Shown here: positions 1 to 58,839 of the stretch, one piece after another | Numbering within the stretch: the stretch's first letter is position 1 | How the letters are laid out: every line of letters starts with the position of its first letter | Assembly: GCA_030704615.1 (NCBI GenBank) | Contig: CM060733.1 | Span: 73,098,001 to 73,162,000 of the forward strand | DNA from: Takakia lepidozioides | Lineage: Eukaryota > Plantae > Bryophyta | DNA length: 64,000 nucleotides | Direction of reading: 5' to 3' | Made by a program: the position numbers and the translations under genes | Notes under the pieces: model-generated | What the model saw: only the letters and a program-made list of their open reading frames with translations | Told to the model about the DNA's origin: nothing | The model's database searches: none

Positions 1-63
1 CAAATTACAAATAATGAGTAGCTAGCATAATATTCAACGGGACGCAAATTCGTCCAACTCACC

Positions 64-3740: not shown

Positions 3741-3776
3741 AATGGATGTGATTCTGTCTGTGTTTTTTGAATGCAG

Positions 3777-30384: not shown

Positions 30385-30785
30385 TAAAGACATGACTTTG
30401 TATGCATAAACACCCCAGTCTGTGATGAAAGCTGTCTTTCCCTGGTCTTCTTCCGCCACTTGCACTTGGTTATACCCACTGAAGCCATCCATGAATGAGT
30501 ACATCTCATGGCCTGCCACAGTATCCAGTACAGCTTCTGTGAATGGCAAGGGAAAGAGATCTTTCTTTGTACAAGCATTCAACTTCTTATAATTCACACA
30601 AACTCTCAGTTTACCATTCTTCTTGGGAACTATCACAATGGGTGACAACCAAGTTGTATACTCTATTGGGTATATGAACTTAGCCTCAGCCAGCTTCTTA
30701 ATCTCTTCCCCTACCTTACGTGCATAGTTGGGATTCATCTTGTACCTTGTCGACTCAACAACTGGCTTGCCGTGCTGCAATGGAT
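30385..30785 (-). mobile_element. Ty3/gypsy non-chromovirus RT N-half
   Basis: WLSPIVIVPKKNGKLRVCVNYKKLN...YSFMDGFSGYNQ...YKVMS. Confidence 0.92.
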
Positions 30786-30788
30786 AAC

Positions 30789-33591
30789 ATTATGGAAGGC
30801 CGATGATTGCAAAATAGCCCTTGTCATGTCGTCTTTGTTGGCTGTGTAGAGGTCCACTTTTAAGACACCACTCCCGGTCTACCAGCTCGCATGCACGGAC
30901 TCAGACATGTTCACATTTGGCATTGTTGTGTCCTCTTCCAGATCCAATCCCTGCAGGTAAAATCTCCATCATGAGAACTACATTTGCGTGTACAACGAAA
31001 AAGGCAAGGTCTTAAGGTGAGGTCCATCGAAACGATATCGAGCATGAAGTTATCGGCACCGTCGAATGCTTCATGACACATAATCCAATCTTAAAGTCGG
31101 TGCAGACTATAAGCTACCCACAATAGTGTCATGTCTTACGGTATAGTCGGTGCTGACTATAGAGGGAATGTTCTACTGAAGTGAGCTGCACAGATAGGAC
31201 GCTATGTTATAGTCGGTGCAGACTACAATCCACAATAGTGGCATTCCAACCGAGGCCGACGTTTGGAGGAATAATTTGCTACATGTTATGTTATAATCGG
31301 TGCAGACTATAAGCTGTGGACAATAGTGCCCTACGCTATGCTATCTTCGGTGCAGACTGTAGAACGAATGTTCTGCTGCAGTGAGCCAAACCTCATATGA
31401 TTAGAGAAAATGTATTCACATTAAGGATCAATATTAAAATCTAATGTCATAGTCGGTGCGAACTATAAGGTAAAACAGTGTCATTGCAACGCTATAGTCG
31501 GTGTAGACTACAGTGGAATAAGGTCTCCTCATATGTACTGTGCTTCATGTCACCGGAGCGACTATGAAAGCAAGGTTTTGCTCATGTGAGCGGATATACA
31601 TCCGCTCACGGATTCTTTTGCAAGTAGAAACCATAATAGTCGGTACAGACTATGAAAGTTTCACTTTTGCTCACGTGAGCATAACTCGAAATAACTGGGC
31701 GTATGAAGATATTGCACCAGAAGACGACCACCAAGCTCGGATGGCCAGAAATGAAACCTCCGCTTCCGCCCCAGTATTTGTTGCTCTCCATTTCGTACAA
31801 AGCTGTACATGTGCTTGTTGGAGGTTTTCGGAGATGTATTTTTTGGTCCACTTCTGGAGGCTCTGACCCCAATGGAACCCACATGTTCTCTCACGATCGG
31901 GCATGGGTTCCCCGCCTCCATACATTTCGCGAACAGCAGCCCAGTTAGCATTTGCATTGTCGGCCATGAATCCCCGAAATTGCGGTTGCCCCTTCCCTGC
32001 TCGCAGCATCTGTTCATTGATGGATTCCAACATGATCTTCTATGATTCTATATCCTCACATTTCATTTCACAAATTGCGATCGTCATGAGCTTCCAAAAA
32101 TTCGGATGGTACACGTAACAAGCCATTGTACTCCGTGTATCCGTTTCACGTTGTCAAACATAATCCAGCTCCTTCCCAGCTCCCCCCCCGGGACGCATCA
32201 TGTCCACAGATGGACTTCATAGCCCTTTCCAACAGTTGACATCTTGAATATGAAACATCTCTCATCGACACTTCCTTGGCCTGGGAAGCGGCTCCCATGG
32301 AAATAGTCGTACCCGCTCCACTTTTTCATTGTCAGTAAAGCTTCTACTTCACTCCCAAGCCCCATTTGTGCTTTTTTCTTCTTTGTCTCGTAACGAACAC
32401 CACATTTGCCCACGGCACCGACCTCCTCCATGAACTCCTCAAACTGCTCATCATCAAGCTTCCATCTCTCGGTTGCACCTGGCGATAACACCTTCTCCAT
32501 GGAAATGGACTGAGCAGCAGACATTTGGACCGATTTTGGCCTAGCAGACGGTGACCTATGGATTTCTTCAGCAAGTGCAGATTTGGCTTTGGCAGCAGCT
32601 TCCCGGCATGCTCCAGGTGCAGATGGATGTGAATGAATGCCAACATGCACGGCTGCTCTGGTCATCGTTGGTGGTCCTATCACGTAGAACATTTTGGCAC
32701 GGCAGGTGTGCATGCATGTAGGTGGATGGTTGCAGTGAGAATATAGGAAGGTGTTCGGGGGCACCTGGCTTTGCGGTTTGAACTGACCATCGTAATGCCC
32801 CATCCAATGAATCTCGTTGTGGCTGCTCTCCCTGAGGAAGAATGGGCACGTTCCTCGGACACAACTCAGCGCACCAACACAGTGTACATACCTATAATGA
32901 CATTGCAAGTCAGTGCAGAAAGTGCAGAAATTGCACTATGGAAGTCGGCCACGACTACAACTGCACAATGGACAGTGAGCAGGAACAAAATATCACCTCA
33001 TCTGACTGCGCCGCCTTTTGTGCCAATTATAGGAAGCTTTAAGTTCGTTGTCTTCGTGGTAGCCCATGGATTGTCGTCGTACTTGTGGTCCATGCCTTCA
33101 AGCTGACTTGCTGGGGATGTGTTTGATGTCGGTGGAAGCTCATACACGACATCACCATCAACGATCCTTGGCAAGCACTTCACCTACTGCCCTGACAGCT
33201 CTGGAAAAGGGGAAGGAGGTCCATGGTGACATCTTCAGAGCTGGAATTGTATCATAGCTTCACTTCTACTTCTTCAAAGTTTATCTTCCCCAAGTGGGAT
33301 TTGGAATCAAGATGGAGAAGCTTAAAGATATCCAATATGGATGGGCCGGAGTGTCCATAAGTGGCCTTCTTGCCAACAAACTCGGGGCGCGGCACCTTTT
33401 TGGGAGGTGAGGCAGATGCAGCCAAATTGGGTTTCACCCTTCCACCCTGAGGAGCAGAAGCAACAGTTGCAGGTTCACGTGTCGTGGAATTCCTATCCAA
33501 AGTAGCAGGGACACCGAACACTTTATATCGCAATTCACCTGTAATAGGCAAAATCCACGATTTGTGGTCGTTATAAGAGAACTTTATGGAC
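30789..33591 (-). pseudogene. MULE-type DDE transposase with GCM-like region, copy B (inverted 5' portion)
   Basis: YELPP, DHKYDDNPW, CVGALSC, AAVHVGIHSH, FMADNANANW, RTCGFHWGQ. After intron 30951-31674 comes exon PNVNMSESVHASW carrying the likely third catalytic residue. Confidence 0.78.
31090..31655. repeat. Dispersed array of ~9 ATAGTC-GGTGCA-GACTAT palindromes in an intron
   Basis: Copies near 31095, 31143, 31209, 31293, 31343, 31449, 31494, 31550 and 31636; related copies at ~26917-27020. Confidence 0.85.
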
Positions 33592-34620
33592 GTTTTTAAT
33601 GACGAACTAAAAGGAAAGGTTCTAGTCCCGACCGCCAACAATTATTAGAACGGGCGGCAGCGCGGTCTTCTGATCCTCTGAAGATGGCAGAGGCAGTAAG
33701 AAGTTTTGTGAAGGGAACTCCTCTCCATGGTAGAAATCCTGGGCTCGAGGGCGACTTTCTTATTTGGACAACGAAGCGGAAGATTGTTTTGGGCAACTTA
33801 GAAGACGAGGAACACCTTCATTCATGGAGGCCTGACATGAACCTCCGCACCACACCCAGGCGCCGTGAAGGTGCCGGAGGACTAAGAGTGCCCACAACTA
33901 CTGTTCAGATGTCTCTCGAGACATTGGAGGATGACCTTCCACTACAGAATAAAAAGCCGGTTTTGGAGACCGCCGTGTCCACAGCATGTTGGCACATCGC
34001 CCGGACGTCCGACACTTCAAGAGTAAAGTGTTGGGCAATACGGTCTGACAGTGCATAGGCATGCAAAGAAGAAATCCGGCCACTCCACAGTTTGGGTGTT
34101 CCTGCTCCAAAATATGTGGGTCGTCACCATCCTCCGGCTTTGGTAAAACCAAAGATGATGGAAATGTGGCACTGCCCAACTGATATCGTGTATTGTGTCG
34201 GTGGTGAAGCGGGGCGATGTGTGCTCGATAGACCAGATGTTCCCAACGTTTGGCCTGTGATGGTTAGGACAAGTTTAAATCAGGAGGAGGTTGACGCCTT
34301 AACCGTGGCTGGATTTCGACTTGTTCCTACAGACGACAAGAGCGCTGCCGAGGGAGAGGGGGACATTGTTGCGGATGATAGCAATCACCTGGATCCGGAC
34401 ACATATGCAACCAAGAGATGAGGTAAAATATATCGACGAAAGCCATTGAGTGCACAAGCCTGTAAAAAGATGGAGCTCGGACAATCTTTGAAGGCAATTG
34501 TACAATCGTTCAAAGATGTTCCCCGCCTTGGAATTGGTCGTGTGTACACACTCTGCACACCGGGATCGGCCAAAGCAGGGGAGGTCTACAATGTGTGCAT
34601 CTCTAGAAGTCCGGAGTGCA
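33592..34620 (+). pseudogene. C-terminal region of MULE-type transposase copy B
   Basis: KGSSPDRQQLL...MAEAVRSFV, WHIART, WHCP..C, WPV...GFRL, YNVCISRSPEC (start of a SWIM-like finger). Homologous to 42660-43215. Confidence 0.7.
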
Positions 34621-34739
34621 GATGATACCAAACAGTTGAAGGTGGCATAGAAAAGCCTAGTGTCTATTCAGTGATAATTGGGGCCTCACTAAGTACTAGA
34701 TGTGATGACACCATGGTCGGCCACGATAGACAGTCGTCA

Positions 34740-34900: not shown

Positions 34901-34939
34901 TCTTTATTATTATTATTTTTGGCCCCTCGAGTCCTCCCT

Positions 34940-35480
34940 GCAAGATGGAAATTCGGCGCCACGTTTCCATCTTGGGGGATGACGTTCGGCTACCACCTGA
35001 CTTTCTCCCCTCTCGCGATGCTTTCACCCGACCCCCCCGGATGGAAATTTGGCGCCGTATTCCCATCCTGCGGGAAGGACTAGAGACCCAAAAAGAAAAA
35101 CATGTTTTTTTTTTTTTTTCTTTTTTTTTTCCCTGTACGAGTCCTCATTGTGGGATGGAAATTCGGCGCCATATTTCCATCTTGGGAGATGACGTTCGGC
35201 TACCACCTAGCTTTCTCCCCTCTTGCGATGCTTTCATCCAAACCCCCAGGATCGAAATACGGCGCCAAATTTCCATCCTGCGGGGAGGACTAGAGACCCA
35301 AAAAAAAAAAATGTTTGTTTGTTTTTTTTGTTTTTCCGTACGAGTCCTACTGTGGGATGGAAATTCGGCGCCATATTTCCATCTTGGGAGATGACGTTCG
35401 GCTACCACCGGGCTTTCTCCCCTGTCGCGATGCTTTCGTCCCCTCATGATGGAAATACGGCGCCGAATGTCCATCCAGCG
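34940..35480. repeat. Array of six GATGGAAA-N3-GGCGCC-N3-TTTCCATC palindromes in ~205-bp dimer units
   Basis: Copies near 34944, 35040, 35154, 35250, 35356 and 35448. Confidence 0.92.
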
Positions 35481-35949
35481 GGGTCCATTATGGAGGTCAA
35501 GCGATTCCCCCTTTCTCGTCTCGACTCATTCATGACTTGATACTGCTCTCAAAGTGCGCGCCGGTGGTTATTAAATTGTCCATTGGAGACTTGCTATTGT
35601 ATAGGGTTTGCTACTATGAGCATCCCTGGGGCATAAAGTTACTTCCTTTTGAATCGGACTTGAAAGATGCCATTTTTCATGATTGGACCCTGTGTGTGAG
35701 ACATGTAGGAAACTTTATGTTTAAAACGTATGTCCATATTGGTGGGTGGGGGATTCTCTGCACCAACCACAATGCTCAAACGATGGAGGTAGAAATCTCA
35801 AAGCTCACTTTACTTGGTCTTCAACGTTTTTTTTTTTCAATTGTCGTTATGATGTTTTTTGATACATCTTTGTAGTACCGATGCAGGTGTTAAGCAGTTT
35901 GACACCGCATACTCAAGGTTGCAGCTAGGGCATGATCTTGCGTTGACAT

Positions 35950-40870: not shown

Positions 40871-42659
40871 TTGGTGAGGACGGGAGCTCGTGATATCCTG
40901 GATCTGCATGAAAAGATAAATTATTCAGCATCAAACCTGACTTTGCAAAATGTACAGTCCACCTCCCTCTGACAGAGCCTTAACGATAGGATGCCTGCCC
41001 TCCCCAGAGCCCATCATCAGTTTACCATGCATTGTGTCTGGAAGCTGTTGTTATGCTTGGACAATCCAGTTACAGCATCAATTGGGCGTGAGTTTGGGGA
41101 TTAGCACACCTTATATTCAAGAAAGCAGTACGATATATCATCCAACACTGCTTTTCTGTAGCCAGCTGGTTAATGCAGTCCAGCTTTTTTGGTTGCACAG
41201 AGACCGATAGACAGACAGAAGAATGGAGATTTATTGCAGGAAAGCATATGATCCGCTGAGACTTGAAAAGATAAGTATGGTAGCCAATTTAAAAAATCCA
41301 GTGTAATCACCTTCTTCAAGGGGATTCTCAGATTGCCCGGGCTCAACTCCAGCTGTGCCTTCTGAAGAGGCGGTTCCCTTCGAGTCCTCATTCAATTCTT
41401 TCTTCCGTGGTGCATTCTGATCTGTTGGCATCTGGAAACCTGATTCACACTCTGTACATACATATTAGACCATCTGCACATATGGATGTTTAAAGAAATC
41501 ATCAGGAAAGGAGGTAATTCTCCAGGACAAGAAAGATGATGGCTTTAGAACGTGCTAAGGAACTTTGATGCAGGCAGAAAGCAGTGGCCCTCTCAGAATC
41601 AGCAGGTCTGGTCTCCAGGATTGATCTAAAATCTAACCATACAAATTGCTCAATGTACTTGGAACAAAGGGATTCAAATCGAGCACCACACTTTCGCAGT
41701 TTCCCTCAAAAGCAGACTCAGCACGAGAACTCAACGTCATATATCGTACGCCCGAGCACACATGTACACTCAGTCAAAACCCTCAAACAGATGATCATTC
41801 CCACCACGGAAAGACTGTAATTTAATGAAAGAGACTGGCATCCCCCACCCGCTGCCAGAGAAATCACGCAGCCCGACCACATCCAAGCTAAATCCAGCAG
41901 CTTTTTCCGTAACAAATGCACAAATTTCGGACGGTGGTAAGACTTTGAGAGAAAACCTTCGATTCAATCAACGAATCTCGCTATGCCCTGCGAAAGCTGT
42001 TAGAATAACACCAGGGAAAGGTGTACCCGGAAGCTAATCGAACTTGAATAGACACCCAAAAAATGGCGTCTGGAGGTTGACAAGGGAACCGCTGAAAAAA
42101 CCCATACAATGTCAATCTCCAAGAACTGCCAGTGTAGGGCAGCATGGCAGGCCATGTGCTTCCACCGACTTTTGAATGAATGATGGATGGGCAAGTGTGT
42201 GAGAGCGAGCGAGAGTTAGTCATACACTGGGTTTTCTTTCATCCATTTCTGCAGTCTATATGTGGCAGGAATATCTCAAGGGTTGAGCAAGAATAAGTAA
42301 AGTAAAAGTAAAGTTTGTTTGATGTCCAGTGAATTTACAGAGCCTACTGCTCAACACAGAGCCCATCGAGGGGCCAATGGACAGTTGAAGGCAAGTGTTG
42401 AAGGATTGAACCCAGGATCATAACCTCACAAATACCCAACCACTGGGCCTCCCAAGTGCTCAAGTGAAAGGATACAAGGACTTTACGTATACGTAAAGCT
42501 TCAGCACGAGGCCATTACGTGGGTCGGGCACAATCATGTATAGGAGAAGGGCCTAAGTGGAGGGCCTTCCACCATGTGAGGGCCCTAGACGAGGGCAGTA
42601 GCCCGAAGGCCAGGTCCCGAAAATGGTGGAAGGCCCGACACATAGGCCCTTCTCCTGCG

Positions 42660-43215
42660 TAAAGAACTGCCCGAGAATCACTCTGAAGTGTTCGAGGTCC
42701 GGGCGATGTGCCAGCATGTTGTGGACATGGCGGTCTCCAAAACCGGTTTTTTGTTCTGTAATGGGAGGTCATCCTCCAAGGTGTCTACAGACATGTCTAC
42801 AGTAGTTGTCCCCCAGTTGTCCGCACTCTCTGTCCTCCGGCACCTTCAGGGCGCCTCGGTGTGGTGCGGAGGTTCATGTCATACCTCCATGAATGAAGGT
42901 GTTCCTCGTCTTCTAAGTTGCCGAGAATAGTCTTCCGCTTCGTTGTCCGAGTGAGAAGGTCACCCTCAAGCCCTGGATTTCTACCATGGAGAGGAGTGCC
43001 ATCCACAAAACTTCTTACCGCCTCAGCCATTTTAAGAAGATCCGAAGACCACGTTGTCGCCCGTGCTAGTAATTGTTCGCGGTCGGGACCGGAACCCTTT
43101 GCACCACCATTCAAATAATTGTTGTAGGACGATGATTGCACAGTAGCCCTTGTCATGTTGTTTTTGGTGGCTGTGTAGAGGTCCACTTTCAAGACACCAC
43201 TCCCGCCCTGCCAGC
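42660..43215 (-). pseudogene. Fragment of MULE-type transposase C-terminal region (close relative of copy B)
   Basis: SW.GGSGVLKVDLYTAT...QSSSYNNYLNGGAKGSGPDREQLL. It spans intact the point that is split between 30789 and 33592. Confidence 0.78.
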
Positions 43216-44957
43216 TCGGGGGATGCTATTGTGTGACCAGATCCCGCGAGCAGAAATCTGCTCACGCTTGAGGACTTGCCTACCTATAATCACGGACGTC
43301 CAGTCGACTTAGAAGACCTATTACTGTGCACAGGCCGCCAGTTATCACAAGGTCGGATATGGATGCTACTGGCATGAATGAGGGATGAATGTCGAATGAA
43401 TGTTTGTTATAACGAATGAGAGGGTGAAATGAATGACATACAATGAAAGAATAGATAGTTGTTTGTAGTTGGTAGCTTTCCAAAAATCCCTGCCAGCTCC
43501 GACATGAAACCACTGCTTGTCTTTGCTTGAAAATCAATTATATGTCGGTGCATATGCAGTGTATATTGCAAACTTTGAGTCCACATTGCTTTGTTGATTG
43601 GGAAGGACCACATGTCATTTTTCCAGTTATACAAGGTTGATAGAGAGGCTCACATCCAATCATAAAGAAGGCATACAGGTGAACTCGTGGTTTTTAAGCA
43701 AATCCTTCACAAGAATCGATTCATTCGGACAAAGAAGATCCACTGCTAAAAGACGCACTGTTCAGGACGAAGGCAGAACTGTCCACAAAGACGCTAGCCC
43801 TGCTCTGCTGAAAACCATAACTTTCGTGATGCAGAGAAGGGGGAGATGCCAACAGACTATATGTCGCGGCCTTTTGCCTTGAGGCAGGGGGGTCGGGACA
43901 CAAGAGGGGCTGCCCTGTGGTGGGGGCAGTGGCAACAATAGATGCGGGGGCTGAAGCACCCTTGAGTGCCCAAGGCACTTAAGGAGGCGAGCGCGCTCAC
44001 TAGGTGGAGCCCCGCACACCGGGTTACGGTGGGGGTGGTTCCACGAGGGGTGGGTGGTAGCTTAGTGGTCTTAGTGGGGGTGGCATAGGACTCACCATGG
44101 GGCGGAAACCTTGTGGTGGGAGTCGTGGGGAGTCTTGGGACTCATCACGGCCCAATGAGGCCGTGGTGGGTGGGCCAAGACTCACCGCGACTCATCACCG
44201 GGAGCCGAGGGTTTTTCGTGTGGTTCGCCATAAATTGGCAGGTTGTTTGTGAAACCCCCGTGGACAGTCACAGAAGTATATATAGGGAGTAGTAACCCCG
44301 AGAACGGTGCAAGCCCGTTGGTGACCAAAAGCTAGTGAGTAAGTGTGCGAGCCGGAAAGCGATCAAGTGGTGGGGCTGTTTCGGACTGCCATCGACCAAA
44401 GAGAATTTCCACTTGGCCCAAATTGAGAGAGGGCCTCGTGGATGAGTAAAGGGGGACCATTATGTCCCGGTGAGCAGCCGAAGCTCCGAGTTGGCCCGGA
44501 GGCCAGTTTGGGAGTTAGGCGCGCGCATCAAAGTGAGTAGCTATGACTTGAAGGGGAGCTTACCAAAGTGAGGTGCGCGACACCGGCGGCCAGTTTGGGA
44601 TTTAGGCGCGCGCATCAAAGCAAGTAACTATGACTTGAAGAGGAGCTTACCAAAGTGAGGTGCGCGACACTATACTCCTTAGCCGCGCCTCCACATAAGA
44701 TGACAAATGAAATTGTGTTGGAGGACTTGGGAAAAAATCCGGGTTGGCAAAGAACGGCAGAAACCGTGGCGTCATAGGACTCCTGCAACCACACAGTAAT
44801 AAGAAAACTTCGTAAATACTCTGGAAGCCAAACTTCAGCCACCAAAAATAACACCAAAAGGATCCGTCATGGGGTCTATGAGTTGCCACAAAAGAACATG
44901 CATTTACTCACATGAAAAATCCGAATCCACATCCAGAGCATCCGGCTCTTGCAGATC

Positions 44958-46500
44958 CTACTCCTCCACAATCTTCTCAGTCTTGGTCAAATGCGAGGAT
45001 CCCTCAGAGAGTGGAGCGATGACCCAAGAGTAAAGCTCCTCGTCCCTCTCAAACCCAAAAAGATGTGTTTCTGCACACTTGCAGGCATGGAACGAAGCCC
45101 CTGCAGGATAGCGAATGAAAGCACGAAACCGTGTCACAAGCCAAAATAGGAGAGGAACATGTGCAACGAAGAATGGAGAGTTTCGGCATGCACCTGTGCC
45201 CATGGAGAGGTCAACCACTTTGCCACCATGTCGGCTGCATGTCTCAATGAAGGTCTGCATGAACGCGGGCGACTTCTCCCGGACACCTCTCCATGGAATT
45301 CCTCCAGTCTTTTTCAGAGTCTGGGACGCATCCACATAGTTGTGAACAACATCAGATTCGACTGGGTCACATTCTGGGTCTATGTGCAGACCTCCTCCCC
45401 AAACGTTGAAATGCCCATGGCAGGCCGAATTCGTGACAGGCAAATGGCCTTGAACATATGGGTCTGCACCAGCAACAATGGAAATATGTCAGCAACTCTG
45501 GGTATTCAACGACAACACGGATGAAGACAATGAAAGTTTCAGGAAATACCTTCTGCCTTGGAAACTCCCCCTTCGACAGAGGCAGTGTATTAACACATGT
45601 CCATAATTTGTTGATTTGGAACCCAGAGGACTTCATGTAGCTATGAAGAATCTGGCGGGATGCCATGTCGTCAGATTAAAATATCAGAAGGCCCCCTGCG
45701 TCAGAGAGGAACTTGTTGCTGAACGAGAATGCCCACTGCCAATACATAGGGTTTTGAGCATTCCACTGTGGAGTCACAACATGGGGAATGATATCAAGCA
45801 CAGGCTGCCCATCCGGGATGTCAAGGAGTACAAGGTCAGCGGCGTAGGGCTGCTGGACACCGTTCACCGAGCATGGATTCTTCGTCACCTGCCAAAAGCA
45901 AATGCAAGCGAATCAAATTGGGTAGTTGGTGTACATTCAGGGAACTGGTAGTACAAAGAACTGTTGGATTAAGATGTCGTTGACGACATCTTAATCCACC
46001 AAATCCAACACCCCACAATGTCATGAAATGGGAATCAAAGTTGAAAGATGCATGTGCATTACCAGGGTGAGGAAAGAGCAGAGATGGTCCCATGCAGGAG
46101 ATTTGACCCCTGTGAATGTGGACTTCCTGGACTCCATCATACTCAGGAAGCTGACGTTTGCCGTTTTCCGCTGGAAGTGCGGACCCACTACTCTGGAGAC
46201 ACAAACTCGGGCTTCGTAAGGTCGTTTCCCTGCCCTGTGGTTAGTCCTTTCATCAGCTGGGAGGGAAATCTACTGGACCTCTGTACGCACAATGCGATCA
46301 TCTGCCTGTGGGCGATCAAAAACTGCCCCACCAGTCCCTGCAGGCCCTGACCCAGCATCAACGCCAGCCGCAGCACCGGCAGACCCACCTGCCTCCGCAG
46401 TCTGTTTCCCTTTGTTTTTCTTCTTCCCACCCACGGGGGTGGCCGTCTTTGCTGGCTCATTCTTACTCAGCTGCACAAGGAACCTAGCCTGCAACTACTC
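44958..46500 (-). pseudogene. Beta-class N6A/N4C methyltransferase-like gene, copy C (all motifs present, frameshifted)
   Basis: Exons ~45888-45550 (ADLVLLDIPDG..WN..FLSDAGGLLIF), 45463-45194 (KSPAFMQTFIETCSRHGGKVVDLSMGTG) and 45100-44958 (ASFHAC..THLFGFERDEELY). The 5' end is approximate. Confidence 0.78.
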
Positions 46501-46603
46501 ATCTGTCCGGGGTGCCAAGGCATCTGCATTCTCATTCTAATTCCTCAAGATTTGGCAGAGAAAGCGGAAGAAGGCTTGGGAGAGTCAGCGTCAGTTCTCA
46601 TCC

Positions 46604-49600
46604 GTGGATCCTGCAGTTCAAGAGCAGACCATGCCAGAGCAGGGTCATGTCGCTCAGGAGGAGGAGGTGCAAATAATGCAGTGTCCACGACAGGTTGCAG
46701 CCGAGGATCAGCAAAAAAACACACAAGTGCCTCCACAATCCATGAAGGAGAAGAGTCAGGTGCAAGGCAAAAGGCGTGCAGGAGGGGGCGGGTCTTCTAG
46801 CGGAGGAAAGAAGCCTGAGAAGGTTAGTTCATACATTCGAATCCATGTTTCTTGCAACACAAAGGAGTTAGATTGAGGTGTCGCTGACGCCACCTAAATA
46901 GGGCACCTTTCCGGGTAATGGTGTACGTAGGAAGGTTAAGGAGAAGGAAGATTAAGGTGTCATTGACGACAGCTTAATGTGCCACTGCGTTCAACCAAAA
47001 ACATTGAGAAAACACCCAAGAACTACAGCAGATTAAGCTGTCGTTGACGACAGCTTAATCTGCCACTGCATTCAACCTCGAACATGGGGAAATCACCTAG
47101 AAAAACAGCAGATTAAGGTGTCGTTCACGACATTTTAATTTGTTAATGCATTCAACATAAAACAAGGGAAAAACACCCTACAACTACAGCAGATTAAGGT
47201 GGCGTTGACGACATCTTAATCTGCCTCTGCATTCAACCCAAAATATGGGAAAAACACCCTACAACTATAGCAGATTAAGGTGTCGTTGACGACATCTTAA
47301 TCTACCAATGAATTCAACCCAAAACATGGGAAAAACACTCTAGAACTATAGCAGATCAACAACACCTTAATCTGCCTCTACAATCAAAATAAACATGGGA
47401 GAAACACTCTAGAACTACAGCAGATTAAGCTGTTGTCAACGACAGCTTAATCTGCCACTGCATTCAACCTCAAACATGGGGAAATCACCCTAGAAAAACA
47501 ACAGATTAAGCTGTCGTTGACGACATCTTAATCTGTCAATGCATTCAACATAAAACATGGGAAAAACACCCTACAACTACAGCAGATTAAGGTGGCATTG
47601 ACGATCTCTTAATCTGCCTCTGCATTCAACCCAAAATATGGAAAAAAAAATACCCTACAACTGTAGCAGATTAAGGTGTCGTTGACGACATCTTAATCTA
47701 CCAATGAATTCAACCCAAAACATGTGAAAATCACTCTAGAACTTCAGCAGATTAAGGTGTTGTTGACGACAGCTTAATCTGCCTCTGCAATCAACATAAA
47801 CATGGGAGAAACACTCTAGAACTACAGCAAATTAAGTTGCCGTCAACGACACCTTAATCTGCCACTGCATTCAACCTCAAACATGGGGAAATCACCCTAG
47901 AAAAACAGCAGATTAAGCTGTCGTTGACGACATCTTAATCTGCCAATGCATTCAACATAAAACATGGGAAAAACACCCTACAACTACAGCAGATTAAGGT
48001 GGCGCTGACAACATCTTAATCTGCCTCTGCATTCAACCCAAAATATGTGACAAACATCCTACAACTGTAGCAGATTAAGGTGTCGTTGATGACATCTTAA
48101 TCTACCAATGAATTCAACCCAAAACATAGGAAAATCACTCTAGAACTTCAGCAGATTAAGGCGTCGTTGACAACAGCTTAATCTGCCTCTGCAATCAACA
48201 TAAATATGGGAGAAACACTTTAGAACTACAGAAGATTAAGCTGTCGTCAACGACAACTTAATCTGACACTGCATTCAACATCAAACATGGGGAAATCACC
48301 CTAGAAAAACAGCAGATTAAGCTGTCGTTGATGACATCTTAATCTTGCCATGAATTGTGTATCCTAACACATGGCATTTTGCAGAAAAAGAGAAAGAAAG
48401 CTGGGGGAAGCCAGCCTGCAGAGGAAACAGTTGTTCTTGAAGACAGGGACATTGTTGTGGACGCCAACTATGAAGCCAAGGTGCATTCTCTTATGTACGC
48501 CACCAAGGTGAACTCGAGGAAAGTCATCAACTCCATGGAAGTGAAAGACGGCACTCTTTTCATTCCTCTGTGCCGGATGATTTCTATGCCAGCAAATCGG
48601 CCTGCCCTTCACCACGATATCAAGAAGCTACAGGGGGATTTTATCCATGGGTACTTGAAGGGTTCGGCTATGTTTTACGTGTCACTGACTGATATCCAGG
48701 GATCTGAGAAATTGGTGGACTTGGATGTAATGGACAGTTGGGACCCGCTTTGGAAAGAAGTGAATACGGAGTTTGAGATTGAGTTTTCACAGAACCAACA
48801 CACGTCCAGTACATGAACAAAATGTTCTTAGTCTGGGATGGCAACCACCGTTTGGTGGCCTGGATGGAGTACATCAGTAAGATGCATGCGGAGAACAAAG
48901 AGTGGCACTATCGGGTTCAGTCAATGGTCCTAGATCCGGAGGGGAAGTTCACGCAGCTTCTAACTGCAATACACGATATCAACAAGTAAGAGTCTTGCCT
49001 ACTTCTTGTCTTCCATTTCATTGTTATGTCAATCTTCAGACTTTGTCAACTGACTTGTTCGCATTGCAGGGGGACGGAGACATCCCATGTCACCACCAAC
49101 ATAGTTCATTCCTTGTTTCGTATGCAAAGCATAGGAGTGATGCCATTGGAAACGTTCGCGAGTGTCTTGTCCTCGGACACACTGAAGAAGTGCCAAACGA
49201 TCAAGAAGACAGAGACTTGGTACAACCTGACAAGGGAGGTGTTTCTCGACTACTTGTACGCGGTGAGTTTCTGTATGGACTGCCATTCTGCTTGAATTGT
49301 GGATATGACATGTTTTTGCTTTGGTTTTGTTGTTCACGAGGGTTACATGGATGTGTCACAGCAAGAAATAGCAGAAGTGGGAGAACAAGCCAAGCTGGAG
49401 TATTACGCCACTACAGATAAGGATGAGAGAACGACAAACGGGGGCAAAAATGAAGGCGGACATGGATACCTGCAGGAAGAACCTGAAGAGCGCGTTCGAC
49501 AAACACATTCGAATCGCTGACCCCGGATTGGGAAAGGGGTTTTTGGAGCAGGTTCGGATCCACTGGAACAAGCCCACTATGCCAGAGATGACACAGGAAA

Positions 49601-50117
49601 AGCTCCACCGCCTTTCATTTCCATGGTTGACCCTGCTCAGAAAGTGAGGTGGCTGGAAATCTGGAACTCGGATCCGATCATCCGGGATACAAACAATTTC
49701 CCAAAACCAATGAAGGACGCTGAGACTGGGGTGGTGACACCTGTCAACGACTGCGCATTTGACACTTGGTTGCACAAAGCGACCTTCTGGAGCCAGGTGA
49801 GACTCTAAAAACATTGTCACTGTTCCAGCAATGAGTACATGGTTTCTTCTGTTGAATAACTCAACATTTGGCGGATGGTTGTGCAGCTGGAAAAGCGGGC
49901 AATTGATACTTTTGAGAAATCACTGCTGGACTACAAGATCACAATGACCACTCCGAGCATCAAGTTCCAATCATACGTTCGGAAATGGAGAAGAGAGCTG
50001 TGGAAGTATGCATTTTTCCGTGAGTTTGAGAAGAAAGAGGGCATTCTCCACTCGCAAGACTTCGACCATCAGTCTCGCAGAGAACTCAACACCTGTTTGC
50101 CTGTGCAAGACACTTAA
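46604..50117 (+). pseudogene. Multi-exon gene with ParB/sulfiredoxin-like domain
   Basis: IPLCRM..NRP...DIKKLQGDF..GY and FLVWDGNHRLVAW (48831-48860). GT-AG introns at 46823-48384, 48986-49069, 49263-49361 and ~49797-49887; several frameshifts. Confidence 0.68.
46868..48345. repeat. Tandem array of ~81-bp units, each with a ~36-bp palindrome, in a 5-unit higher-order repeat
   Basis: GCAGATTAAG anchors at 46947, 47028, 47108, 47189, 47270, 47351, 47420, 47501, 47582, 47666, 47747, 47827, 47908, 47989, 48070, 48151, 48231 and 48312; degenerate first unit at ~46868. Confidence 0.97.
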
Positions 50118-50553
50118 ATACAGGCATGCCACGCATCCATGTTTGACATAAGGGGTTCGACCCACAGCGTAGTTACTGAGGATGTGGCATCTGCAAAGTC
50201 GGCCGCAATTCTTGCCTCTCAGAATCTTGTGTCCGGCGGTCTGTGATCTGACATCAATGGGATGAAATTCTCCAGCATCTGTCAGAGTCAAAGCCGGCTA
50301 CTAAACATCATGCAAAGTAATAATTTGCCTCAGCACCTTCAGTCGGTGGATCCACTGAGACATTGTCAGGAAGTGGTCCGCATAGTTCGGCCTTCCTGGT
50401 GTACTCTTATCACCTACTCTCCACTGTCCACACTCCTGTGCTCGTGCATGCAATGTCTCTCAACTCCGACGTCGTTGTTTCTACTCCAACGCACAAGCGG
50501 AGTACCTGAGTGTCGTAGCCGACGGGAATGGGCTTGCCGTTGTTCAAGAAGAC

Positions 50554-52469
50554 TTGCTTTGCATAACCGTCCGCTTTGAGGCAGGGACTGTACATGTGGT
50601 GAGAGAGGTGTATGACAAAGTGGGGAAGGTTGAGGGCACATGCGTTCAGAAACCACATTTGTCTGGCAGTCGGCGAGAGTGGAGAGTTCCACTTGCAAAG
50701 TATCGCGTTCATGGGGATCAAAGACGTCTGTCGGGAGGTTCCATAATCACGCCCGGAACAGCAGCTTCGGTGGCTCAGGTGCCGAAAACTCTGCCCATCA
50801 AAAGAGAAGAAACAACCTCCACCACATTTGTTGATATCTCCGATAGTTCAGAAGAGGACGTGTCGGAGCTCCCCGCGCCTCCGAATCAACGTCTGCTGGA
50901 GGACCCCGATGTGCAAGAGATCGCAAGTGTCATTCCGAAATTGCAGTCCTTGAGGGGGTTGCCGAGATGCAAGAGTGATGTGAGAGGCATTGACTGGGAT
51001 ACACAGCGAATCGTTAGAGCAAAATACCTACCCACTGAATTTAATGGTGATATCATTTTTGAGCTGCCACCAGCGACCTCCTTTGGGGATTGGCACGACG
51101 AATGGTGGGCATGGACAAGAAGCACGATGGACATCCATGGTGCCGGACGAAAACTTCCAATATATGCAATCCGTATGGCTTGAAGTTCCGTAGATCGATT
51201 TGCGTTGGACACCTCTGTTGTCCAAATGCTTCTTGCCAGCATTTCCAAATAGACGGTTCGGCAAACGAGACGGAATGGGAAGGTGTCTACGACAACCCTT
51301 TCAAAGTAGGTTGTGCTCCTACAAGCAGTAGTACTCTCATTTGCAAGTTGTGTAAATTGGTCCCACAGTGCATCGCAGATTGCAATGCATGTATGTACTA
51401 CGTGCTTCACAATTGCAGTTACCTCACAAGGGCATGTATCCATTTCGGCATTCATGCACATCCAATGTCCCAAGGATAGTGCTGGGAGACTATTGATACG
51501 GTCCGTTCACTGCTTGAACACGAAATTCATAGTGCTCCTGGTGCATTGCCATCAGCCACTGCTCTAGCAGCAAGCACAGGATTCTTACAAAAGTATTTGT
51601 TTGGGGAATTGTAGGAGTCCACCACTAAATTTGACACTGCCTCCCTTGACGATGTTCTGGACCATTTCTCAACATTGAGTTCTCTGAATGTGCGAAATCA
51701 AATCAACGTCCTAAGGGGGGGTGCTGCCAACACAGGCTTTATGGATAGCATCCTGGAGTTGAAGCGTATAAGCCGATATGACTTCATTCAGGACAGTGTT
51801 TTCCCGGGGCAAGGTGCCAGGAAAGTGTATTTATTCAAGATGTTCACAGTTGGTGAGGGATCGGGAGTTAGTCTGGTGCGAAGAATGCAGCCCGGTGGTG
51901 ATCTTCAGAAATCCTGGATTATGTTTGATCACGTGAAACGTGTGAAGGAATGGACGACCATGGCCTGTCATGAATACGATCCTGCCTACCAGATAGTGAT
52001 GACTGTTGTTGTTTGTGACATGCAGTCGGAGGACACAGAGTCACAAATTCTTATGTGGAAGTCCCTTGTTAACGTCATGACAGCTCATGGTGTCCCAGAT
52101 CCAAACTTCACTGGGCTCATGGCTGATAGCGCTCAAGCAAATTGGAATGTTGTCCGCATTGTTTTTGGTTCAGGTGACCCCAAACTACCAATGGAAGGCC
52201 GGGAACGCACTTGCCTCTTTCATTGGAGCCAGTCCCTACAACGCCACACAAAGAGTTCCATAAAATTGGAGTTGCGGGAGGAGCATATGAGACTATGTCG
52301 TGTGTATAAAGATGCCACCTCCGAGCAGGAAGCCAACTCTATGTTTCAGACTATTCGAGCATGGTGGTACTCATCTGAGGCAGCGAGTCTGGATGGAATC
52401 AAAGAACTGGAAGACTGGTTGGGGTTCTGGAACTTCAGATATATACAGTGGGGTGCCTTCATGACAACT
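50554..52469 (+). pseudogene. MULE-type DDE transposase with GCM-like region, copy C (3' exons not found)
   Basis: IIFELPP, DKKHDGHPW, CVGHLCCPN..C, ACIHFGIHAH, MFDHVKR, LMADSAQANW, RTCLFHWSQ; donor at 52470; stops near 51479 and 51612. Confidence 0.78.
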
Positions 52470-52836
52470 GTAAGTTAGTAGCGTAATGTATGTATGGATT
52501 TGTGGGTTTGCAGTATGTTCCTGTGGACTAATCCCCATTTCCCTCTTTGTACACAATGTCACTGCCATGTGAGACCGTTCACATGCAGAAGGTGACACTG
52601 TGAAGAATTCCACACCCTGAACTGCCACATTTTCCACACACATGTGGAAACACCCACACTGGCGTCATGTGATCACAACCACTCCCACAACATGCATAAG
52701 GACTTTGCGTCTTCCGCTTGATGCCTGCCATTGCACAACCAATTCATGTATCAACAGTAGTATGCAATAGAATGGGAATTACGTATGAAGCAATTGTCAA
52801 TGCGCGGAAGAGGAAGTGCTGGTGATTTATGGGGGT

Positions 52837-55800
52837 TTAAGAAGAAGCAATCGGTAACGGTTTTGTGGAAAGTTCATCATTTTTCTGGAAATCTACTTTC
52901 CTGGCAAGGGACATGTTGTTTCCATCATCATTTTTTATGAATGGAACTGCTTGAAGAGGGTGCAACAGACCTTTGTCGATTCTAACTTGTAAAGTGGACA
53001 GCCTCCCACGAACACAACGAAGCTCGGCAAGCAAATGTTTGCGCATTGTTTCACTCTCATTGCCAAGAAGCGACAGGGACTTCATCTCAGATTCAATTGA
53101 TGAAACATCCGATGGCTCCTGCCGACCACGCCGGGATGATGCTGAGCACTCCGTAGGCTCTGCTAGATTCACAACTTCCTCCTCTGCATCAATATCTGGA
53201 AGTTCCGATTTCATCAACATGTGAAGACCTCCATGAATGGTCCCGAGCTTTGTGCCACAGAGCTTCACAATAAGCCCTTCCTTCAGATTGGCTTCATCAA
53301 TTGAAGAACGCGGATTTGATGTTTGCACAAGTTACCCTTCAAAGCCCATGGACAATCGCAACAAGCCAGGTGGGCACGTGCATAGATTGTGTAGCTTCGA
53401 CCGGCCGTTTGAACACTATCCACAATCGCCGGATGACCAGGAACAGTGGGCAAATGAACATTGACATCAGGGATCTCCCTTGCAGTCCAAACAGCATTAC
53501 TGATAAATTCCTCTGTCGTACATTCCTTTTGAAGCCTTTCGATTTCAAGTTATCTCTATACCAATAGTGGGTTAGAACAGGACCCACGAGTTCGCTGATC
53601 AGCCAATCGATTCTCCTGCCATCAAGCCTTTGCTTTCCCGAGCGTAAACGAGCCTTCAAATTTCCGTGCCAAGATTCAATTGCGGCATTAGTATCCTGAC
53701 TTGCGTGGGGAATATAACGAGCCCCCGTGATCACATGCTCAGTTTTGGGACCCATTCCATTCTGATGTAACGTAGGAAGTCACGCGCAAGCGGATAGGAA
53801 TAATTCAAATCTTCCAGTCGCTCCAGCGCCCACTCTTCTAGGGTGACTCCCACACAGGCGTTAATGCCGTACATTACGTCGCCAAGCTGTTTCAAAACAG
53901 CATTGCGAGTGTATGGATCGGGCATCTTACGCCACGAATGTTTCAGCCAAGCGCGACGAACATGCCAAAGGCATAGAAATATTGCTACGTCCCCAAACGA
54001 TTCCCTGCACGCACACACATCAAATGCCACCCAATCCATCAGTGTAACTCTTGTCAGTGTAACTCTTATCAGGAACTCTTCGCAGTGTAACTCGTAGAAG
54101 TGTAACTCTTCAAAGTGTCACTCTTAGTAGTGTGACTCATGTAACCCCTCGTGCATCTGGTCATGTAACTATCAGTGTGAAACTCACAGCAGTGTAACCC
54201 AACACATATAACCCCTCGCAGCGCTGTAACGCAATCCATGTTACACCGTGTAACTCTCAGAGCGACCCAACCATACAAACCCTCTGCGATGCTCCCAGTG
54301 TAACTCACATGCTATAGCAGTGCAACCTAATCCATGTAGGACTGCGGATGACACGCCGTGTAACTCCCTGTGTAACTCGCAGTGTAACCCTCTGTCTACC
54401 TCATAGCAGTATAACCCTCGGTCTAACTCACAGTAGTATAACCCTCGGTCACAGCCAACCCTCCGTCCAACTCAAGGCAGTAAACCATCTGTCTAACTGA
54501 TAGTGTAACCCTCAGTGTAATAGACAGCACTGCAACCCAATCCATGTAACCCCTCGAGCAACTGACAGTGTAACTCCAAGTGTTACAGGCAGCAATGCAC
54601 CCCCTCGTGTAACTGGCAGTTTAACTCTTACTGTGATTCTCAGTGTAACTAGCAGCAGTGTAGCCGATCCATGAAACCCCTCGTGCATGCAACTTGTAGT
54701 GTGACTCAGAACATTGTAACTTCTAGCCGTGTACCTGATAGCATTGATTTCTGCGTCTGCATCGTCGACAACAAAAGCATTTGGCCTCCAATCTGGTTTG
54801 CTCTGAAGAAGTCGGTCGCGAAGACGTTTCATCCAGGGGCTCAAGTCAGTCGTTTTGTTTCTCGCTGATATAATATAAGCAACAGGTATGCCGTTGAGCC
54901 ATTCGTCAAACACCATCATGGTATACATTGGAACTGCAATGTCGCAATGGTACAAAAATGAATAAGGTGAGCGTTAAATATTGGCAACAGTTGCATGGCA
55001 CTCACATTTCAGAATGCAATGAAAGGTAAAGCGTGACACGAATACCTTATTCGTTGGTCCCAAATGTTGCATCGCAGGATACCACACGGTTGTGTCCCAA
55101 GTCGATCATTTTCTGTTTTTGCCACTCCGTTTGTATTCCAATTACGAACTTCAAATCACCCGCCACTGGCGCTGTCTCTTCATGGTAGAAGAAGACGCTT
55201 TCAGGATTGCTATTGACCCACATACGTACACTTTGTGCATCATCTGGATGTTTTTTTAACTCTCAATCGCAAGCTTGTCGGCAATGTTTCTCACGTCGTA
55301 CTCGAACAAGAAACAATCGCGACTCCACTCCATGCCTGGCTGAGACGCACAAGCTTCCTGGAGTTGTTGAGTGTGTTGTGTCATAATCATAGCTGGAGAT
55401 AGGCCACTGCGAAGACTATCGACGATCCACTGTTTCATATCTTGGCTGAGACGAGGGGCATGCACGAATCGCGAGAAATGGGAAGAGGGGTCAGCTGAAC
55501 CATGACATGGCTTTCCTTTTGCATCCACATGCTGTTTCTGGAAGTATGTGATGATTGCCAACTCTGAATCTAGAAAACACTGGCCAACTTTGAAGCTACA
55601 CGTACACCCACGTTTGTATGACTCTCCGAAATCCGCTGCCTTACGTCTGATTCGCTTGACTGCTGTTTGATTATCGGAGGCTGCTATCGGTTTTTCTTTT
55701 TTCTTCACAATCGGCGGGTCCGTGCGCCTATCTATCGGGCCGTAGCAGCAGTGGTACCTGCAAAAAAAAGCATATAAAGCGAGGAGGGTTATCGCCATAT

Positions 55801-56320
55801 ACGACTTTGCTAGACTAGCAGAAAGAAGTGGGGCTGGGAATGTTATACAACCCTCATAAGTGACTTACTTATGCCACTGACGATAACTGTTTGCACGCGG
55901 TGTTGTCAAATCTGGCAACTCACGGTACCTTCGATCTTGAACATAAAATTGGGTCTTCCCATCCACTCTACTCCTTTCTCCCTCCAGAAAGTCAGGAATG
56001 CGAGACCATGGAACGACAGCTACTTCGATGGATATCCGTTTCCCTTTTCCCTGGGAAACCTGGCGTATCCAACGGAGGTTTGTGTGATTGAAAAGCCCGT
56101 CTATGGGCAGCTGTAGGATGCATTTCAAATGAGATACCAAATGCTGCAAATGACAGAGTTCTCCCGCCTCATCTTTCAAACCATTTGATTCCAATGCTGC
56201 TTTGCGTTCCTCGTCTAGCACCTTCGCGGCAGCACATGCCATTAGCAGCAACAATACCACCAGTACAGTACAAATCGCATAATACACGCGGGCAACGCAG
56301 CGGAGCCCTCGGGACTGCAC
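52837..56320 (-). pseudogene. Second MULE-type transposase, related to the plant SWIM zinc-finger family (AT1G60560/AT4G13970 type)
   Basis: YHCCYGP, KRGCTCSF, HVD..G..CHG, IGIQTEWQ, CDATFG, FVVDDADAE, LCLWHVRRAW, NAAIESWH. Introns at 55758-55868, 54934-55045 and 54005-54734; stop at 55256. Confidence 0.82.
54040..54720 (-). repeat. Intronic TGTAAC(C/T)C short-motif array
   Basis: Many GTGTAACYC motifs; the reverse complement of the 56480-58035 array motif. Confidence 0.85.
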
Positions 56321-56479
56321 GTCGTCTACGCACCTGGTGAAAATGACGAGCGATGATGGAGTTACACGTGGGTTTTGATGTTACCGAATCGTGTAACCCA
56401 GGTTTGAATTCAAAATATCTGACACCTCTTGGAGCCCGCCAATTTTTGCCGGGCACTAAGGGGCTACACGAACAGGGGT

Positions 56480-58035
56480 GACATGCGTTGGGGATAAAGG
56501 ATCCGGGGTGACACGAGCTATGAGTGACACAATCGGGGGTTACACGGGGGGGATTGATACAGTATCGGGGTTACATGGTGGGGTTACAATGTGAGAGTTG
56601 CACAATGAGGGTTACACGAGGCGGAGCTAAAGCGCTGACGTGCAGAGGGTTACAGGATGATGGGGTTACGAGGAACTGGAGTTACACGGAGAGGGTATAT
56701 GGGATAACATGATACAAGCTTACATTGGGGTTACACGATGCAGGATAACATGGAGTGAGGGTTACACCTCGCGGGTAACAGAGGGTTACATGGGTTACAA
56801 AGGGTTACAGAGGGTCATGGGGTTACATGGGTTACAGAGGGTGACATAGGGTTACATGGGAGGGTTACATGGAGTGAGGGTTACACTCAGCGGGTGTTAC
56901 AGAGGGATAAAACGGGTTACGGAGGGTTACATGGTGGTGAGGGTTACACCTGGTGGGGTTACAGAGAGTCACAGAGGGTCACATAGGGTTACATGGAATG
57001 AGGTTACACAGGGGTGAGGGTGACACTCTACGGTGTTACAGAGGGTTACTGAGGGTTACATGGTGGTGAAGGTTACACCTGGTGAGGGTTATAGAGGGTC
57101 ACAGAGGGTCACATGGGTTATAGAGGGTAGAGGGTTACATGGGTGAGGGTTACATGGGGTTACATGGGTTACACAGGGTCACAGAGGGTTACACGGGTTA
57201 CGCAGGGTCACAGAGGATTACATGGGTTACAAGGAGTGAGGGATGCATAGGGATGGGGGTGACACTCTGCGGTTGTTACAGAGGGTTACATGGTGGTAAG
57301 GGTTACACCTAGTGAGGGATATAGAGGGTCACAGAGGGTTACATGGGTTACAGAGAGTTACAGAGGGTCAGAGAGGGTTACATAGAGTGAGGATTATATA
57401 GGGGTGAGGGTGACACTCTGCGGTGTTACAGAGGGTTACATGGTGGTGAGGGTTACAAAGGGTCACAGAGGGTTACATGTGTTACAGAGGGTTACATGGA
57501 GTGAGGGTTACATAAGGGGTGAGGGTGACGCTCTAACGGTGTTACAGAGGATTACATGGGTACAGAGCCACGGAGGGTCACAGAGGGTTACATGGAGTGA
57601 GGGTTACATGGGGATGAGGGTGACACTCTGCGGTGTCACAGAGGGTTTGTGAGAGTTACGGAGGGTTACATGGTGACGAGGGTGACACTCTGCGGTGTTA
57701 CAGAGGGTTACATGGTGGTAAGGGTTACACCTGGTGAGGGATATAGAGGGTCACATGGGTTACAGAGGGTTACATGGTGGTGAGGGTTAGAGAGGGTCAG
57801 AGAGGGTTACATGGAGTGAGGGTTACATAGGGGTGAGGGTGACACTCTTGTGTTACAGAGGGTTACATGGTGGTGAGGGTTACAAAGGGTCACAGAGGGT
57901 TACATGGGTTACAGAGGGTTACATAAGGGGTGAGGACGACACTCTACGGTGTTACAGATGGTTACATAGGTTACAGAGCCACAGAGGGTTTGTGAGGGTT
58001 ACATGGTGGCGAGGGTGACACTCTGCGGTGTTACA
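56480..58035 (+). repeat. GGGTTACA-based complex satellite
   Basis: Dense GGGTTACA, GGGTCACA and GGGTGACA motifs with recurring longer blocks such as GGGTGACACTCTGCGGTGTTACAGA. Confidence 0.95.
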
Positions 58036-58839
58036 GTTGGGTTTTTCGTCATTGCTTCTTTCTTCGTAGTTCATCCTTCTTCCGGTTGACATTCGGTGTC
58101 TGCCGTGGTTCATCCGTTCCTTGTCATTCATCCTTTCGGGATGAGGAAGGATCTGGAAAGTGTAATGAATTCAGATGCGGCGTTACATGAATGCAATACT
58201 TGCAGGTAGGCTTATTATTATTGCGGGCTACATTATCCGCCATTTTTATGCAATCCGTTGGATTGTGCCCTCGTTCTCGCTCTAATTTATGATAAGTGCC
58301 TCGTGGTGTGCTCAAGAATACATATATGCCTCTCATTAAAACTCAATTTCCTAATTAAAAATTTGTTCTTCTCACCATTTCTCTACTTAATTTGTAGAGT
58401 GCGCATTATCAAACCATCTGCAAACAGAATACCGTAGTATAGGGGTCATTTTGACACAAATTTTAACATTTCAAAGATTGTTGAAAATTTTGAAAATTGA
58501 TTTTGTGAAATTAACTGACTTTGTGAATGATAATAGAGTATCTTTGGAATATTCCATATGTTGCCACACATCATACTCAGAACACCAATGGATTCAACCA
58601 GAGGGCTACCCTTCTCAGTCATGTATCTTACAGACATTGAACAAGAATCCCTCACTGGCTAGGGCTTCACTGCAAACAGCTTCTCGAGTCTCCTCACCAT
58701 CTACTCTAGCCAAAAGTATACTTTGCGATCAATGGATGCCTTACCTGCCAGGATCTGCCACTGGTCCTCTGCTGACAAGGAGTTCAACCCCTCGCACCAA
58801 ATGACTACCCCTGCTTTTCTGGCTCCTTGCTAACTACTT

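Follow-up and report, generated by a model that had tools for sequence, protein, structure and literature searches.

What brings a methyltransferase-like gene, a ParB-like gene, Mutator-like element (MULE) transposases and repeat arrays together within 13 kb of a bryophyte chromosome? We asked this of a 64,000-nt stretch of Takakia lepidozioides (assembly GCA_030704615.1, contig CM060733.1, positions 73,098,001–73,162,000; hereafter the window), in which 44950–58040 had been proposed, from the letters alone, to be one undescribed mobile element (the original prediction). We find that 44.7–52.5 kb is a broken (defective) copy of a Mutator-type transposon, with a ParB/sulfiredoxin (Srx)-fold gene, a gene of beta-class N6/N4 methyltransferase (MTase) fold and a palindrome array. 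The element is a land-plant variant of a known, uncharacterised class; its most likely role is anti-silencing directed at its own sequence. CpG is depleted in the window (0.56), where Gypsy-type and CACTA fragments abound; the window genes have spliceosomal introns, and their named relatives are from Ceratodon purpureus. Spliced gene models were searched one exon at a time. Fold models of the ParB and MTase parts, and the MTase fold matches, come from relatives and not from the broken window copy.

Loci fetched via either gene gave four outside families: that of C. purpureus (L012, L013, L016, L017), an ENA family (L001, L014, L015, L018–L020), L003 and L002. The ParB gene stands head-to-head with the transposase in all four, and in three it continues on the same strand into the MTase as one gene; the fourth contig ends first. 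Ceratodon gene models connect the helical region after the ParB fold to the MTase. Two intron positions are common to the window copies and Ceratodon, and the one at the motif I exon of the MTase is likewise found in other copies and in Ceratodon. C. purpureus has at least four copies, two of them ∼99% identical; four on different chromosomes share the same end base (...TTTTCCC) and have unrelated flanks. Three ENA copies have a common GGG(G)TGTACC end. Near-identical outside copies, with fixed GGG termini and differing flanks (single ends, two families), show that the element moves as one unit, and one that exceeds 16–19 kb.

Between Ceratodon subfamilies, ratios of nonsynonymous to synonymous substitution (dN/dS) were 0.02–0.11 for the MTase (near 0.02 in the motif IV exon), 0.07–0.10 for ParB and 0.06–0.09 for the transposase, values indicating that the cargo is under purifying selection. 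Constraint was weaker among ENA copies, which are ∼90% identical, and absent from the motif IV exon (dN/dS about 1 or higher, on few changes), a pattern expected of copies in decay. Synonymous divergence between the Ceratodon subfamilies was far higher in the cargo (dS 0.5–0.9) than in the transposase (0.06–0.12). This points to the cargo having been swapped as a module. Alongside this, the transposase halves of L012/L013 and L016/L017 are 92–95% identical and the ParB–MTase halves mostly 70–85%; the array core changes from CGGTGACG to CGTTAACG, so that cargo and array seem to have been exchanged together. Two further features of the ENA loci were seen. Shared sequence runs at least 6 kb past the MTase (L018:13338-20657, L019, L020), with more minus-strand open reading frames (ORFs; 226, 86 and 74 aa), and a DUF7869-containing element, 78% identical and inverted, lies 1–2 kb outside the transposase end (L001:14941-18552, L014:15882-19488).

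These data bear on whether the locus is a chance nesting of unrelated repeats with passively captured gene fragments, as in Pack-MULEs. The window is a transposon graveyard, its second MULE is unrelated to the element, and its copies differ in arrangement, all of which would suit such an origin. Yet the head-to-head layout in four outside families, exact common ends, conserved introns and strong purifying selection oppose it. We regard it as barely credible overall; it is largely refuted for the three-part core and holds only for 52.8–58 kb.

In the window copy the order is MTase (minus strand), array, ParB (plus) and transposase (plus). The genes originally proposed could be located, with MTase exons at 44958–45876 (minus) and ParB exons from 48385 (plus). 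The transposase exon was found too, at 50488–52469 (plus); its GCM-like label goes back to a Cys/His pattern and nothing else. An N-terminal conserved Cys and HxH pattern is compatible with a GCM-type Zn-ribbon insert, and Pfam and PDB profile searches detected no GCM/WRKY-GCM1 domain in the transposase. By its motifs the family's protein fits a Mutator/MULE transposase of DDE type with CxxH after the second Asp: exon 1 has FDH, MADS and CLFH (D, D, CxxH), and exon 2 has NL(S/A/L)E plus SWIM. The nearest Atlas clusters are MULE (0.94–0.95), and Pfam PF10551 gave no match. Exon 2, with the Glu and SWIM, is missing from the 50–52 kb copy, where the second MULE occupies its place. By pattern, SWIM (CxC...CKH) occurs in L002, L003 and L014, with a remnant in window copy D; Pfam SWIM did not match the L003 ORF. 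Across the window pieces, a Pfam scan returned SWIM and nothing else.

The ParB and MTase genes of the window copy are two divergent halves of a gene that is fused in other families. A private inversion splitting the fusion gene, suggested by an 8-bp direct repeat at the breaks, was rejected: the middle exon was found on neither strand, and diverged contigs span the junction. Contigs of the same species cover 48.4–52.5 kb deeply, the ParB–transposase junction included, at 86–90% identity. Because these diverged contigs cross that junction, the split layout, with ParB then transposase, is common to a family and not private to the window copy; an old inversion in the family founder is possible. 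Other copies in these contigs have indels at the points where the window copy loses frame. Contig depth, which is summed and does not give copy number, drops to the flank level of ∼65 at 52.8 kb (run X3). On the MTase side, no partner terminal inverted repeat (TIR) and no target site duplication was found in the window for a candidate terminus at 44729. Just outside this candidate left end lie imperfect hairpins (42542–42656 and 44120–44193) and an 87-bp tandem duplication (44496–44670).

Does the cargo contain the two folds? The family's ParB exon model (mean predicted local distance difference test score, pLDDT, 79) matches KorB, PadC, Srx, Noc and ParB. The top 47 Foldseek matches and top 8 VIA matches are all ParB, Noc, KorB, PadC or sulfiredoxin (Z 5.2–7.3, then 3.7). 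Individual matches are weak (E 0.013, Z 7.3) and the set is consistent, so that the models place a ParB-like domain in the cargo, as in the algal accessory genes discussed below. For the MTase domain, the Ceratodon model (pLDDT 89) matches CcrM (E 2e-13), then BceJIV, HpyAVI, PvuII, MboIIA and bdelloid N4CMT; a profile search finds the same enzymes, and one family exon lies above the Pfam N6_N4_Mtase cut-off. This PF01555-type domain is fused to ParB in Ceratodon, L003 and the L014 family and is split from it in the window copy; as modelled, then, a beta-class amino-MTase fold lies fused or adjacent to ParB, again as in the algal class. Nothing indicates a virus or prophage-like element: IMG/VR gave no relative of the transposase, the ParB part had no phage match, and MTase matches in phage collections were weak (E 0.003 or worse among the matches listed).

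A ParB-like fold raises the prospect of a selfish segregation or addiction module, in which ParB clamps on a parS-like array would bias transmission or tether excised copies while the MTase marks self. Plasmid centromeres have palindromes in tandem units, and the array anatomy resembles them; the ParB fold and GNHR motif are conserved. Against this, neither a ParA/ATPase nor a nuclease partner turned up in the loci examined (a ParA ATPase was sought in the ORFs and gene calls of the window and the fetched loci, with the distal cargo of L018–L020 left unassigned), the elements are integrated, and helical phasing of the sites (p 0.04 pooled) was not reproduced in halves (p 0.17 and 0.70). We consider such a module very improbable.

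The palindromes themselves exceed chance: the window has 34 palindromic sites, versus 0–4 in shuffled sequence. Of the two repeat arrays originally described, the 81-bp array is palindromic (46949–48350 proper; 17.4 copies, each with a 32-bp palindrome), and the second, at 56.4–58.0 kb, is not. Arms vary by family, whereas the core CG-K-Y-R-M-CG is found in all window arrays and L012. The core was derived from these, and the other loci serve as an independent check. Among CG-N4-CG sites, it fits 10 of 35 in L018 (2.2 expected) and 5 of 23 in L003 (1.4 expected), and L001 has seven core sites inside the element and none outside. Sites lie between genes, in ParB and MTase introns and in the transposase intron, which holds a site or array in three families. 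The element thus accumulates palindromes with a common CG-N4-CG core in introns and the intergenic region. A CRISPR-like reading of the 81-bp array was discarded, the spacers being copies of each other. Separately, non-palindromic tandem arrays (9-bp and 233-bp units) lie between ParB and transposase at L003:7268-7596 and L002:850-2478, that of L002 without the CG-N4-CG core.

What might such sites be for? To the idea that the cargo is a self-targeting regulator, which binds the element's palindromes and shields or controls the element that encodes it, through amino-methylation or by masking CG sites, we give an even chance. The second gene of a Mutator-type cut-and-paste transposon would then encode a self-targeting chromatin regulator. 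Its protein (two proteins in the split family) would bind the palindromes as a dimer, perhaps with nucleotide-dependent loading and spreading, as for ParB from parS. The MTase-fold domain would mark CG-containing sites with N4-methylcytosine (4mC) or N6-methyladenine (6mA), or occlude them, and the element would stay expressible in the face of host 5-methylcytosine (5mC) silencing, an effect comparable in function to that of VANC in VANDAL elements. In favour of this stand the gene layout of the outside families, the two folds, the fixed ends with differing flanks, the low dN/dS, the enriched core, the sites in the transposase intron, the like proposal made for algal elements and the precedent of VANC. 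Several observations weigh against this regulator. The stretch appeared in no RNA run searched, no helix-turn-helix was demonstrated in the ParB-like protein, and L002 shows no core enrichment. CpG retention in the elements (0.53–0.78) is only modestly above that of neighbouring retroelements (0.18–0.66) and does not exceed that of the second MULE (0.84), so we set retention aside as an ambiguous sign of protection. In every copy seen, motif IV is D-x-P-[D/E/H/N], the aromatic residue gone, and not DPPY. Finally, it could be the zinc domain of the transposase that binds the palindromes.

This last point can be taken further: the palindromes may be autoregulatory sites for the GCM-like zinc domain, with ParB–MTase having other targets, which it might methylate, such as a short motif throughout the host genome or RNA. 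DNA binding is known for the WRKY-GCM1 domains of MULE transposases (PMC1702500), and the core is similar across Ceratodon subfamilies although their cargo has diverged and their transposase has not. But the arrays concentrate in and around the ParB–MTase gene, inverted-repeat arrays likewise lie next to a ParB gene in red-algal elements whose transposase is unrelated, and the repeats of the second MULE are non-palindromic. We hold this explanation to be improbable.

The motif IV change leads to another alternative, in which the accessory protein is a transposition cofactor. ParB-type bridging at internal palindromes would join the ends of a 15–20 kb element possibly lacking long TIRs, and the MTase fold, having lost catalysis, would serve DNA binding or dimerisation; the role would resemble that of MURB, or of TnpA in end synapsis. 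The large size of the elements, the sites in the transposase intron, the candidate end without a TIR-like partner in the window and the missing aromatic residue would all suit this. Retention of the S-adenosylmethionine (SAM)-binding motifs and of the first motif IV Asp, together with the dN/dS of the motif IV exon, argues otherwise, as do the position of sites away from the ends and the similar cargo on unrelated algal transposase superfamilies, which fits a transposase-independent job. A cofactor role is, in our view, rather unlikely. Motif I reads D-x-x-(A/S)-x-TG, with the downstream Glu kept and the first Gly mostly replaced; motif IV variants are DIPD, DAPE, DVPE, DLPN, DQPH and EIPD, none of them the canonical (D/N/S)PP(Y/F/W). 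Because motif IV is without its aromatic residue, ‘modification module’, in the sense of active methylation, is unproven, and we put catalysis at about even odds. Co-occurrence in four families, fixed ends with variable flanks and purifying selection uphold the proposal of a mobile family with several genes, whose ParB/amino-MTase module is of prokaryote type and contains introns; modifying activity is the part that is not upheld.

Returning to the self-targeting regulator, in its boldest form a MULE lineage widespread among seed-free land plants would combine an active, sequence-specific 4mC/6mA writer of non-canonical motif, a nucleotide-dependent ParB clamp on CG-N4-CG palindromes, a spread mark that blocks 5mC silencing, and cargo swapped as a module. 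This we judge unlikely. If the enzyme were active, it would be a second 4mC/6mA source in land plants besides DN4MT1, or else the fold a new base-flipping reader; possibly, a ParB clamp would be acting on eukaryotic chromatin.

Is the element new? Not at class level: ParB plus N4/N6-MTase accessory genes with inverted-repeat arrays were published for algal transposons in 2025. Sola, Plavaka and Mutator elements of algae have been described with ParB–methyltransferase cargo, its function proposed and untested (PMC12477816; bioRxiv 2025.02.11.637652). Our element shares carriage of such cargo inside a DNA transposon with inverted-repeat arrays. In the mostly freely accessible literature we found no paper on land-plant members of the class. 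In Ectocarpus, the giant (21.5 kb) Sola1-1_Ec32 has ParB-like and N4C/N6A MTase domains in one protein, opposite the transposase, with self-modification proposed; green and red algae are cited as having similar proteins (PMC12477816). It differs in its Sola transposase and brown-algal host, versus MULE-type in land plants, and in its single cargo protein, versus two divergent halves in the window family; the cargo genes are likened by domains, not by sequence homology. Red-algal PAG2/PAG3 (Plavaka/Mutator) have a ParB gene by tandem inverted-repeat arrays and a PF01555 methylase gene, also found in Chondrus Mutator elements (10.1101/2025.02.11.637652). As in the window family, ParB and methylase are on separate genes; unlike it, PAG3 combines ParB with a 2-oxoglutarate (2OG) oxygenase and PAG2 the methylase with SET, neither extra domain being seen in the window element.

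Arabidopsis VANDAL elements are also MULEs with an accessory gene, VANC, and tandem cognate motifs in non-coding regions that differ by family (PMC5735166). Among transposon proteins, the red-algal study lists VANC alone as having been shown to bind the element that encodes it and to modify that element (10.1101/2025.02.11.637652). The window cargo has instead ParB and amino-MTase folds, and Pfam scans found no VANC similarity; anti-silencing, demonstrated for VANC, is for the window element a conjecture. With CcrM, M.BceJIV, M1.HpyAVI, M.PvuII, bdelloid N4CMT and Marchantia DN4MT1, the MTase shares the fold and the order of motif IV before I. Those enzymes have (D/N/S)PP(Y/F/W), TSPPY in DN4MT1, in contrast to the altered, ParB-fused and transposon-borne version here. 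KorB, Noc and ParB share the ParB/Srx N-terminal fold, a helical region after it and palindromic sites; unlike ParB/parS, the window element has no ParA in view, and its fold matches reach a Z of only 5–7. The copies in C. purpureus, a laboratory moss, come with a defined candidate site and make the ParB–MTase self-modification proposal directly testable.

The second MULE, with SWIM (52840–56400, minus), and the GGGTTACA array at 56.4–58.0 kb were both found where proposed, and do not belong to the element. They have no counterpart inside 12 outside loci, next to no copies of the GGGTTACA motif occur in the five outside loci counted, contig depth is at flank level, and the transposase has no similarity to the first. 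They are a separate element. The upstream GGGTTACA copies and those in the intron, which are reversed, face each other, and the array is possibly a transposase- or VANC-like target. Coordinates of all features are collected below.

Features of the element, the second MULE and the other copies in the window
Feature	Position	Strand	Basis
Candidate MTase-side terminus (GGGAAAAA...)	44729..44740	+	first 8 bases agree with the inward reading of the fixed Ceratodon end; ∼8% probability by chance in 1.3 kb
Last of the MTase core exons, following motif I (GFE, acidic SAM-ribose position)	44958..45100	-	acceptor at 45101; profile A2 E 3e-31
MTase exon with PWRG-REK-P and motif I (DLSMGTG)	45194..45425	-	PHROG DNA methyltransferase E 0.001; 74 homologues
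MTase exon with variant motif IV (DIPDG)	45565..45876	-	profile E 3e-21
Single palindromic site in MTase intron	45965..45997	.	12/12 arm match, core CGTTGACG
MTase-half low-complexity linker, with stops (putative)	46021..46540	-	translation; placed from its position in P0195, P0190
Putative 5' exon of ParB-like gene	46540..46822	+	donor at 46823; predicted from sequence
Palindrome array, 81-bp unit, ∼18 palindromes, in first intron of ParB-like gene	46868..48350	.	sequence
ParB/Srx-fold exon (WDGNHR motif), one frameshift near 48805	48385..48985	+	profile A1 E 7e-41 and 9e-52
Helical exons of ParB-like gene, to conserved Y-R intron position	49070..50123	+	aligns with Ceratodon P0195 residues 1-153
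Exon 1 of the element's transposase, with a Cys/His zinc domain (GCM-like pattern), the first two of the catalytic Asp/Glu residues (both Asp) and CxxH; stops and frameshifts	50488..52469	+	217 homologues; Atlas MULE 0.95
Separate MULE-SWIM transposase gene	52840..56400	-	SWIM E 7e-5
Intron repeats of second MULE, 16 motif copies	54030..54730	-	motif count
GGGTTACA array upstream of second MULE, 64 copies, non-palindromic	56380..58040	+	repeat analysis
Copy B transposase exon 1	45..1583	-	homology and profile scan
Copy B arrays of palindromes in units of 96 and 73 bp (core CGGCGCCG)	1768..3745	.	repeat and palindrome analysis
Copy B 3' part of fusion gene, exon after Y-R intron to motif I	3778..5270	+	profile scan
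Copy C MTase C-terminal exons	17068..17670	+	self-comparison and profile scan
Copy C three palindromes (core CGGCACCG) in Y-R intron	18370..18550	.	palindrome analysis
Copy C helical exons of ParB gene	18745..19342	-	E 1e-11
Copy D MTase exon of motif IV (DLPNG), with palindromes; an LTR-like repeat on either side	26369..27046	+	profile scan
Copy D block in inverted orientation, from transposase exon 1 through an intron that holds a palindrome array (31080-31660) to the first part of exon 2	30750..33183	-	profile scan
Copy D remainder of transposase exon 2, including a SWIM remnant	33603..34640	+	profile scan
Further palindrome array of copy-B type (210-bp unit)	34928..35483	.	repeat and palindrome analysis
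Transposase exon 2 fragment continuous over copy-D breakpoints	42647..43229	-	84-87% identity to 30789-30889 and 33615-34024

Self-comparison and profile scans bore out that the same parts recur, diverged, at three other places in the window (copies B, C and D). Transposase cores are 42–48% identical, and MTase-like, ParB-tail and transposase pieces mostly 33–57% identical among the four places. The varying gene order that had been described is partly post-insertion damage: an inversion in the 30.8–33.6 kb copy and a ParB deletion in the 0–5 kb copy (B), where no ParB part was found. By sequence comparison, copy D is inverted between 30789 and 33615, because the fragment at 42647–43229 is continuous across the breakpoints. 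Copy C is a rearranged fragment.

Other repeats were seen around these copies. Direct repeats resembling long terminal repeats (LTRs; 25119–26154 and 27047–28007, 81%), with 10-bp CACAGCC units, flank an 890-bp piece of MTase gene. Near copy C, a piece at 16747–17040 resembles CACTA by eye, with no Pfam match, and a 740-bp direct repeat (95%; 15142–15881 and 16116–16855) lies beside a decayed pentatricopeptide repeat fragment (14705–15132; PF12854, E 8e-4). Gypsy-type integrase copies at 5731–8796 and 19420–22396 are inverted relative to each other (88–91%), with a downstream same-strand 445-aa ORF without a Pfam match. At 29955–30780, a CACTA DUF4218 fragment abuts a reverse-transcriptase fragment.

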